A DNA stretch of 64,000 nt from Dimorphilus gyrociliatus (taxonomy: Eukaryota; Animalia; Annelida). Shown piece after piece: positions 26,534 through 29,716 of the stretch. The notes below the pieces were generated by a model that made no database searches, had not been told where the DNA came from, and saw only the letters and a list, made by a program, of their open reading frames with translations. Numbering within the stretch: position 1 is the stretch's first letter; each line of letters starts with the position of its first letter. The stretch spans positions 124,001 to 188,000 of the forward strand of contig CAJFCJ010000012.1 of NCBI GenBank assembly GCA_904063045.1, written 5' to 3'. A program made the position numbers and the translations under genes.

Positions 26534-27272
26534 TGCTATGTTATTTCATATTAGTAGTCTTTTTAGAATTAAATTTATCTGCAGGTTACAAAAAGATTTC
26601 TTTTGTTTGATAAAAGTTCGAAACAAAGGCCCTTTCATCTAAAGATAATTGCTGCCTGTTTCGTTCAAAGTAGGAAATGATGGATAATTTCTTCAAGTAT
26701 ATTTAAAGGAACTTGGTAAAAATTTAAGTGGCTTTCTATGACACAATTAACCACTTCAATTGGGAAAGGTCAAGGTTGACTTTGTCGGTCAACAAAGGCT
26801 ATTCGTTTGGGTAATAAACAATTAAATAAACATAGTAAATTTGATTTGCGACGACGATTGTTTGCGGAAGTTCGCTGATAAGAACAATAAATATAAAACT
26901 AAATCAAAAGTCACAACGAAGATTTACCTAGGTAAAAGTCTCATATTTTCGACGAATGAGAAAAGTACGTAACTGTGAAAAAAAAAGCCTCATCAATATG
27001 CAAATATTTTTACCGGAAGTACAGCTAATTGGTCAGATTTTAACCAATCATCGTCGATCTAAATGTTCAAGTTGTTCAAAATAACTCCGTAAATCACGTC
27101 CAACGAAGAGAATTAAAATTTTCAGACCGTTCGGAATTTTTAATAAACAAATAAGAAAACGTGCTCTTCAATAGAAAGCGGTGAAAAAAGACGAACGCTT
27201 TGTTCAAGGCGAGGATTATTCTAATCTTTTTTGAATGGAGAGAGTTTTCGCTGGATTTATTTACTACCGATC

Positions 27273-28120
27273 ATGCATTTTGGCAAGATCATTTTTCTAA
27301 TTACTACCGTTGAACTAATAAAAGCATGCGGATCTGGTAGAAGATTTTATAGAGGCTCAAAACACCAGAAGCTTGTACCTCTTGTGTTTAAGCAGCATGT
27401 TCCTAATTATTCTGAACAATCTATAGCAGCAAGTGGAAAATTCTCAGCTAAAGTTCGTAGAGATAGTAAAGAATTTCAAAAACTGGCTTTTGTGGACAAA
27501 AGTAGTGATATAATTTTTAAGGATAACGAAGGAACCGGAGCCGACAGGCTAATGACACAGGTATTAAGAGCTAAACTATAAAATCTAATTGTAAAAACGA
27601 AAGCTGTTCGTTGTATAGCATTAAGAAATTGTTTCGTAAGAAGAGAATTCAGTTAACACTTTTAATTTAATTAAAATTATGTAGAAGAAATTCTTGCTCA
27701 TACTGTCCTTTAAAGAAACTCCTTTAACAAATAGAATTCGTTTAAATAAATGCAGCCCCCCTGTTTATTCCTTAGTAAATACATTATTCCTTATTTTAAT
27801 GTTCTTTCTGAACAGAGGTGTAAAGATAAATTGAATAGCCTCTCTATTATGGTAGCAAATGAATGGCCTGGTATAAAGGTCAGAGTTATCGAAGCATATG
27901 ATGAGGACGATCAACATCAGGAGGAAAGTTTACACTACGAAGGAAGGGCGTTAGATATAACGACTTCTGACATTGATAAGTCGAAATATGGAATGTTGGC
28001 CAGGTTAGCTGTTTTAGCTGGTTTTGATTGGGTTTATTACGAAAGTCGATATTATGTTCATTGTTCTTGTAAACCTGGTAAGATACCTATAATATCTATA
28101 TATCTATACAGTATATATAA

Positions 28121-28161
<41 letters not shown>

Positions 28162-28797
28162 GGTAGATCAATAGAACCTCTACAAATTACCTGTCGAAAA
28201 TTTTCAGATGATCTTACGTCAACATTCGGTGGAGGTTGTTTTTCCTTAAATTCTACTGTTCAAACAAATTACGGATTGAGGACGTTAACAGAACTCAAAA
28301 AGGGAGATTTAATTCAAACTATTAATTCTGATGGACAGTTAATATTTACGGAATTTTTAACTTTTCTACATTTTTCTGTGAATACTTTAACGACTTTTAC
28401 AAAATTGATTTTAGAAGATGGCAGAAAATTACTTTTAACCGATAATCATTTAATTTATACACGTAGAAAAGGAATGATCTTCTCTAGAGATTTACTAATT
28501 AATGATGAATTAAAAAGTGAAAAAGAGTATATTAAAATTATATCTATTGACCGAATTAATCAGATTGGATATTCTGCTCCTCTAACAAAGCACGGTACTT
28601 TACTCGTTAATGGACTTTGGTGTTCCTGCTACGCCGAAGTTTTTAGTCACGATTTAGCTCACGTCTCCATGAAACCTATTAGACTTTTGCCAATTTTTGC
28701 TGAACATGTGATAAATTATTACGTTTGGTTCTTAGTTCACCTTGGAAGATTTGTTTTACCCGAAAACTACTGGTTTGATTCACATTTCAGTCAATAA
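27273..28797 (+). CDS. hh: Hedgehog precursor (signal peptide, HhN signalling domain, Hint/Hog autoprocessing domain), 3 exons
   Basis: Exons 27273-27560, 27816-28077, 28208-28797. Signal peptide then CGSGRR; [14 protein letters not shown]|RCKDKLN; [15 protein letters not shown]; GFDWVYYES; G|CF cleavage site (Cys codon at 28237); TxxH (LTDNH); APLT..GTLLVNG..SCYA. Confidence 0.97.
28124..28154. repeat. (TA)n microsatellite in hedgehog intron 2, preceded by TATACAGTATA at 28105
   Basis: Read directly. Confidence 0.95.
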
Positions 28798-29716
28798 ACC
28801 TCTCTGCTATTACCTTAAATCGAACATTTTATCTTGATTACCGAAAGAAAAAAAATAAAGTATAAACACAACAGATGTCGCCACCATAAAATGACTTAAA
28901 CTAAGTTCTTAATATTGGTATAAACATGTAGTCTTCTATACAAAAAGAAAAGATCTCTTGAACTTTACACCTTAAATGGAAAAACTGCGTAAACGAATAA
29001 GAAATTTATTTAATATATAGCTCTATATAGTAAATACTAAAAATATAGTAAACAATAGTTTTAAAGTAGCAAATTAACCTTTAAGAGATGCTGTAAATGA
29101 ATTGAATCTAAATGCAGAAATAACAAAAAAATATCATATATGATGACCCATGTATGAAGAAATCATAAAATAATATCTGTTTACTAGTCCTCAGTCAAGT
29201 ATAAATAAATTATCGCTATTGCTAAAGTAATACTTCAAGAAAGTCGTATTTCTTATGTTCTAGTTAATGTGAACTTTATGCTTTTATAACATAATTTTCT
29301 TATTAGAATCAAGTATGATAAAATGATATAATTTATGGAAAATGATGTATAAGATAGTATTTTTAATTTAAGTAGTGTCTTGATTATTCATTTTTTATTA
29401 AGTAAATTAATTAATTTGATAGAAAAGATAAATTAAGAAGGTAAACAAAATACAAAATATTTTTTTTAGCCTTTTTTTTAACTTTTTGAAAATATTTAAT
29501 CCGCTTTTTCCGATTTATTGTAGCTTATTATTTTCAACTTCTAAGTGCAGAAATGCCAAAACGATTTTATCAACTGAGGGTGAGTCAGATAACAAGAAAG
29601 ACGCTAAGAGAAATGAGAGGCTCGTCATGAGGAAGAGAGTTTTACAGAGATTTTTAAAATAATTTAGTCTTTTGTTCATAAACAATTTTCATTCATCATT
29701 TAAAAATATAAACTTT

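Follow-up and report, generated by a model that had tools for sequence, protein, structure and literature searches.

The engineered Drosophila Hedgehog enzyme D46H (PDB 6TYY) was reportedly presented by Zhao et al. in 2019 as a 'general base swap'. The residue that is replaced in this enzyme, Asp46, is the general base for sterol transfer (PMC8529194, PMC9163320). The D46H variant keeps structure and activity, and its tolerance is widened to coprostanol and epicoprostanol (PMC13738340, PMC9163320, PMC8529194), that is, in the A/B-ring region of the sterol (PMC8529194, PMC9163320); furthermore, D46H SHH is processed in cells (PMC12054796, Fig. 1C). Three of these papers term Asp46 'conserved' and know D46H, or D303H, only as an engineered swap (PMC13738340, PMC9163320, PMC12054796). 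A natural His46 is mentioned in none of the three; Zhao et al. 2019 may mention one. Bürglin 2008 (PMC2362128) and a 2015 cholesterolysis review contain no statement on the residue at position 46, and our literature search found no biochemical data for any natural His46 Hedgehog. A literature search on Dimorphilus together with hedgehog or sterols found nothing relevant. Xenopus SHhC has recently been reconstituted in vitro (PMC13738340).

The SRR has been characterized by mutagenesis of human SHH. The loop between its helices is dispensable, and its deletion is harmless (Purohit et al., PMC7242414). In the HWY motif, H433A leads to a loss of cholesterolysis in cells and in vitro, while W434A leads to a loss in cells, but not in vitro. 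At Y435, an aromatic residue suffices, and Y435F is tolerated (PMC7242414).

An earlier note on the DNA studied here had described a Hedgehog of Dimorphilus gyrociliatus with a natural His in place of Asp46 and an altered HWY motif, and had inferred from both that sterol handling might be changed. The background on which it drew, namely the role of D46 and the activity and broader sterol tolerance of the engineered D46H enzyme, agrees with the literature (PMC8529194, PMC9163320, PDB 6TYY). Here, we compare the gene with its relatives and report that the His is a frequent natural state, whereas the altered SRR is, by comparison with 127 Hedgehogs, a lineage-specific trait.

Results

The window, that is, the whole stretch of 64,000 nt of D. 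gyrociliatus DNA that was analysed, has a G+C content of 26-31% throughout. It contains a three-exon hedgehog gene at positions 27273-28797 of the plus strand, on which all features given below are located. The coding parts sum to 1137 nt, or 379 codons. The coding part of exon 1 (27273-27560), which was read directly from the sequence, starts with ATG and encodes an 18-residue signal peptide, the following CGSGRRF..., in which the Cys is that of palmitoylation, and the N-terminal half of Hedge; it ends with ...GADRLMTQ, and the donor GT lies at 27561. Intron 1 (27561-27815, 255 nt, GT..AG) is followed by exon 2 (27816-28077), which encodes the second half of Hedge (RCKDKL...VHCSCKP). Intron 2 (28078-28207, 130 nt, GT..AG) is a phase 1 intron, and the coding part of exon 3 including the stop codon TAA (28208-28797) comprises the end of HhN and the entire Hog domain of 186 amino acids. 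The three exons were searched separately against Pfam, not as a joined protein. Exons 1 and 2 matched HH_signal (PF01085, E=5.3e-20 and E=1.6e-45), and exon 3 matched Hint (PF01079, E=3.4e-34), with the match ending at profile position 185 of 213.

The gene structure was compared with Logan contigs of four runs (X1, X2, X5, and X6) over positions 27200-28900; expression levels cannot be derived from such contigs. The genomic contigs of X1 retained intron 1 and were free of differences over 27200-28109 and 28182-28900. Each of the runs X2 and X5, which belong to two studies, yielded one contig that lacked exactly 27561-27815 and 28078-28207 and had 0 differences to the window. In the spliced contigs, the joint at the end of exon 1 was found at 27556/27812 with a cut of +4, and the second joint, which in X2 and X5 completes exon 2, at 28076/28207 with a cut of +1. 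Run X6 stems from a relative that is about 92% identical; its spliced form of hh was the same as that of X2 and X5, and intron 1 was absent from it as well. Hence, hh is spliced as modelled, and it is found in RNA-like assemblies. Because the X1, X2, and X5 contigs show 0 differences, the gene model and the CAT codon described below are confirmed independently of the assembly. In the spliced contigs of X2, X5, and X6, Hedge and Hog are joined on a single transcript via GGGCF (28228-28242). This motif contains the G|CF autocleavage site with Cys1 of HhC (codon TGT, 28237-28239), a residue that is Cys in 134 of 134 aligned relatives.

Several further features were noticed at the locus. A (TA)n microsatellite lies within intron 2 at about 28110-28164, and the X1 genomic contigs end there. 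A likely polyadenylation signal, AATAAA at 28854-28859, adjoins the ends of the spliced contigs at 28873 (X5) and 28894 (X2); another AATAAA (28793-28798) overlaps the stop codon, and transcripts extend past it. At the end of exon 1 (27481-27564), further contigs of X1, X2, X5, and X6 match with 5-11 mismatches and then diverge into unlike sequence (translated ..SQRCKDKLVS), which suggests that another gene with a Hedge domain is present elsewhere in the D. gyrociliatus genome and in the close relative X6.

A non-Hh Hog protein of the ARR type was considered as an identity of the gene and ruled out, because a Hedge domain lies upstream and is spliced to the Hog exon. In ARR-tail Hog proteins, i.e. 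nematode warthog, groundhog and quahog and Lophohog (Bürglin 2008, PMC2362128), the Hint fold is likewise present, and the C-terminus departs from motifs K/L of the Hh SRR. In contrast, the tail encoded in the window remains alignable to the SRR helices of Hh (A-H..P-x-R, Y162, L166, G170, and V-L-P), and the true Hedge domain is encoded on the spliced upstream exons.

The His codon CAT (28369-28371) corresponds to the general-base position, Drosophila Asp46/Asp303. In phmmer alignments with PDB chains, the counterpart of the window His was Asp46 in Drosophila Hh (6TD6, 'ILFMDRNLEQ', EVILFMDRNLEQ) and the substituted His in the engineered D46H enzyme (6TYY, 'ILFMHRNLEQ', EVILFMHRNLEQ), and a MAFFT alignment of the Hog domains of 127 Hedgehogs placed it in the same column as Asp46. 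The codon is covered by genomic X1 and by spliced X2 and X5 contigs, with 0 other letters. A sequencing or assembly error at this codon has a negligible probability, as contigs of three runs and two studies agree with 0 differences and His is also present in contigs of two other species; no point in favour of an error was found.

All catalytic residues of the Hint domain are retained. Besides Cys1, these are the TxxH motif, which reads TDNH (28438-28449, equivalents of T69 and H72; T in 126 and H in 127 of the 127 sequences of the MAFFT set), and the SCYA motif (28624-28635), in which the equivalent of C143 is encoded at 28627-28629 (S 126, C 125, Y 126, and A 116 of 127). The observations of the earlier note thus proved accurate in this region: the His in place of Asp46 is supported by phmmer, the MAFFT column, and the contigs; Cys1, the His, and NYY lie where it had placed them; Cys1, TxxH, and the SCYA Cys are kept according to the sequence and the column counts; and the codon, which it had wanted to see confirmed in reads, is identical in the X1, X2, and X5 contigs from two studies, with 0 differences.

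An additional Cys (28621-28623) lies directly 5' of SCYA, so that the window and L001, a contig of a related species that is described below, read W-C-S-C-Y-A; a second such contig, L002, has Thr. In 125 of 127 other Hedgehogs, this position is occupied by A, V or T. The adjacent Cys is the proposed site of the branched thioester intermediate (PMC12054796).

An AlphaFold model of the Hog domain, built with an alignment of 68 rows, had a pLDDT of 91.4 and a pTM of 0.85. In this model, the Hint strands are followed by a helix with a kink (138-150), which a turn of five residues connects to a long helix (156-173); the SRR part is less confident, with pLDDT blocks of 74-88. Among PDB folds, the top match was the D46H mutant 6TYY with an rmsd of 1.6 Å, and the next was 1AT0. 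The window protein and 6TYY are alike in fold, in the aligned His, and in C1, TxxH, and SCYA. They differ in that the His of the window occurs naturally and precedes a Phe instead of the Arg of 6TYY, and their identity is only about 26%. The 6TYY construct does not contain an SRR, so a comparison with it is confined to the Hint part.

The frequency of His at position 46 was quantified in three samples. First, an exhaustive search of representatives with the Hog domain yielded 2703 relatives, and position 46 was counted in the best 150 of them: 88 have His, 54 Asp, three Glu, and two Lys. A Hedge domain is present in 14 of these 150, and 8 of the 14 have His. These eight stem from the spiders Nephila, Trichonephila, Stegodyphus, and Oedothorax, the copepod Tigriopus, the ladybird Henosepilachna, the annelid Urechis, and a record labelled Colinus virginianus that carries the flag UNVERIFIED_CONTAM. 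The nearest Hog relatives among the best 150 are mostly metagenome or Logan proteins that lack a Hedge domain, and His-type Hog proteins appear to form a large group that has been described only poorly. Second, the full-length Urechis Hedgehog served as query of a word search, which returned 120 full-length Hedgehogs, 110 with Asp and 10 with His. The latter include Capitella teleta, Novocrania anomala, Acanthochitona crinita, Procambarus clarkii, Xenopus laevis Dhh-A, and four unnamed proteins; the Platynereis and Owenia Hedgehogs of this set have Asp46. Third, the MAFFT set of 127 Hedgehog Hog domains contains 112 with Asp and 15 with His (about 12%).

A maximum-likelihood tree of Hedgehogs was calculated with the column of position 46 left out. 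It requires 11 changes between Asp and His, at least four of which are forced by well-supported branches. Examples of forced switches are Novocrania (His) beside Lingula (Asp), and Xenopus Dhh-A (His) inside the Asp-bearing Dhh proteins. The X. laevis Dhh-A (P0230) reads FLHRN, and the other Dhh, Shh, and Ihh proteins of the sample have Asp. The exchange of Asp (GAY) for His (CAY) is a one-base change. Across the sampled sequences, Asp and His at position 46 are evidently two naturally interchangeable states in the Hedgehog/Hog family. Because they are interchangeable, with one base to change and about 11 switches on the tree, His46 is not evidence of special chemistry. As a defining feature of Hedgehogs, Asp46, which the window lacks, is of reduced value, since it is not universal, given the His in 15 of 127 Hedgehogs.

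These results contradict the view of the earlier note that the His marks an unusual Hedgehog. It occurs in Capitella, Urechis, Novocrania, Acanthochitona, spiders, crayfish, copepod, ladybird, and Xenopus Dhh-A. The note itself had named a wide distribution of His in spiralian Hedgehogs as an argument against its claim, and a wide distribution was found, both in true Hedgehogs (15 of 127) and in the Hog representatives (88 of the best 150).

We also searched for a residue that co-varies with His46 in 128 Hog domains. The best candidate was Met at SRR helix-1 position 145 (6 of 16 versus 4 of 112), but it was rejected as evidence, as the counts are uncorrected for phylogeny or multiple tests.

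The SRR did not yield the same picture as position 46. Helix 1 (28648-28686; DSSP helices 138-144 and 146-150 of the model) has the conserved A-H...P-x-R motif, with A141, H142, P147, and R149 conserved. Helix 2 (28702-28755; DSSP helix 156-173) is divergent. In the 127 Hedgehogs, its columns contain G (124), V/I, H (120), W (120), Y (123), and, further on, L (125) and Y (103); the consensus G-x-H-W-Y...L-Y (G-V-H-W-Y-A-x-L-L-Y) is replaced by V-I-N-Y-Y...L-V in the window. Thus, the replacement of HWY by NYY (28714-28722) that the earlier note had reported stands, as the column counts show. Overall, the predicted helix-loop-helix and the helix-1 motif are retained, and helix 2 retains only Y162 and L166; the aromatic Tyr that is equivalent to Y435 is kept. 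The loop between the helices has 8 residues and is the shortest of 128 sequences, the minimum elsewhere being 11 and the median 24.

Single changes of the SRR were also found elsewhere, i.e. NWY in scallops and HRY or HVY in abalone and Gigantopelta, and the full combination was found only in the lineage of the window in the sample of 127 Hedgehogs. The altered helix 2 and the minimal loop are, as far as this sample reaches, a lineage-specific trait, unlike His46. As a side observation, HWY is less invariant in molluscs (scallops P0174, P0195, and P0160, abalone, Gigantopelta) than human mutagenesis would suggest. The scallop Hedgehogs of Pecten maximus (P0174) and Mizuhopecten yessoensis (P0195), with N-W-Y, share with the window the Asn in place of the His of HWY. 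They differ from it by having kept Asp46, the Trp, the preceding Gly, and L-Y, so that one of the four changes is common.

Natural His46 orthologs were compared with the window: Capitella teleta (P0156), Urechis unicinctus (P0048), Novocrania anomala (P0155), Acanthochitona crinita (P0203), Procambarus clarkii (P0219), spiders (P0011, P0065), Tigriopus (P0151), and X. laevis Dhh-A (P0230). All are bona fide proteins with Hedge and Hog that have His at the general base, as in the window. However, they mostly have the canonical G-[VI]-H-W-Y...L-Y and longer loops, and the window has neither. Since most His46 Hedgehogs outside the lineage of the window retain the canonical GxHWY tail, His alone is no signal of unusual sterol use, and, as other His46 Hedgehogs mostly keep GVHWY, His46 and the altered tail are uncoupled in true Hedgehogs. 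Among those of the best 150 Hog representatives that have complete tails, a non-canonical tail is found in 50 of 73 with His and in 23 of 50 with Asp.

Two close relatives made it possible to analyse the lineage. P0001 (contig L001) is 79% identical to the window and has the same FLHF and VINYY, and P0002 (contig L002) is 51% identical and has YLHY and D-I-Y. L002 is regarded as an ortholog, because two HH_signal exons lie upstream of its Hint exon. The three proteins form a long-branched clade with 100% support that is attached among spiralian Hedgehogs, with stem branches of 0.78 and 0.62; hh is the ligand gene of a fast-evolving spiralian worm. The spiralian placement, the short introns, and the low G+C content are compatible with D. 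gyrociliatus, a dinophilid annelid. Between the window and L001, dN/dS was 0.13 for the whole domain; taken separately, Hint had 0.09 and the SRR 0.36. These ratios indicate purifying selection on the domain. At the His position, the window has the codon CAT, and L001 and L002 both have CAC. The overall dN/dS of 0.13, together with the retention of His across three species with different codons, indicates that selection has kept both the His and the unusual SRR in place.

Discussion

Taken together, the gene probably encodes a working, sterol-transferring Hedgehog with His as the general base. An N-to-S acyl shift at Gly-Cys1 would generate the thioester, and the His in place of Asp would, like that of the engineered enzyme, deprotonate and thus activate the 3-beta-hydroxyl of the sterol. 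The sterol would be held and presented by the short helix-loop-helix of the SRR, and a sterol-esterified HhN would be released, as with the engineered Drosophila D46H enzyme. Against ordinary sterol transfer, the equivalents of both H433 and W434, whose replacement by Ala causes loss of cholesterolysis by human SHH in cells (with H433A also in vitro), are changed in the window, and so are the Gly before HWY (124/127) and the Tyr of L-Y (103/127).

A rival explanation is that, in the dinophilid lineage, the remodelled SRR helix 2 acted in combination with His46 and Phe47 to change substrate use, be it to other sterols, to another lipid, or to a sterol-independent, hydrolytic release of HhN. We regard such an altered adduct chemistry as unlikely. 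Both the window and L001 deviate at four of the most conserved positions of SRR helix 2, and the third species has D-I-Y, but the helix-loop-helix of the SRR is conserved and evolves under purifying selection, and the indispensable aromatic Tyr is retained. The loop is shorter than in any other sequence of the sample, but it is dispensable in human SHH (PMC7242414). The exchange of His for Asn is, given that H433A abolishes cholesterolysis in human SHH (PMC7242414), the one change that genuinely argues for altered chemistry, but the natural NWY of scallop Hedgehogs that are otherwise canonical weakens this argument. The broader A/B-ring tolerance of engineered D46H (PMC8529194, PMC9163320) and the higher share of non-canonical tails with His than with Asp among the best 150 Hog representatives would also fit a shift in substrate use. 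However, the lineage is fast-evolving, as its stem branches show, and the divergence may represent drift within tolerated limits. It appears improbable that the dinophilid Hog domain has been re-tuned as a whole, by the His base, Phe47, the N-Y-Y or D-I-Y helix 2, and the minimal loop, such that HhN carries a different lipid adduct or none. The changed sterol handling that the earlier note had proposed is thus not supported as far as it was derived from His46, which is widespread, and may still apply as far as it follows from the rare, altered SRR.

A decaying or non-functional autoprocessing domain, with a protein that acts uncleaved or not at all, is very improbable: HWY is missing and the last 28 positions of the Pfam Hint profile are unmatched, but the reading frame is intact, the catalytic residues are all kept, dN/dS is low, the His was retained via a synonymous change over three species, transcript-like assemblies from several studies contain the spliced gene, and the fold prediction is confident.

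For the Hedgehog family, the results mean that His46 is a frequent natural state: of the true Hedgehogs sampled, about 12% have it, the tree requires about 11 switches between Asp and His, and most of the nearest Hog relatives carry His as well. The natural His46 supports, in nature, the result obtained with the engineered D46H enzyme, and the proteins of Capitella, Xenopus (Dhh-A), and D. gyrociliatus are ready-made natural enzymes for tests of sterol tolerance. His46 does not make the hh of D. gyrociliatus special. Its divergent, minimal SRR might serve as a small natural construct for work on structure and function of the SRR. If the adduct were altered after all, the range of the ligand would be changed in a millimetre-sized animal, and, if the domain as a whole were re-tuned, the lineage would serve as a natural experiment in which to see how morphogen range is set by the lipid anchor in a miniaturised animal.
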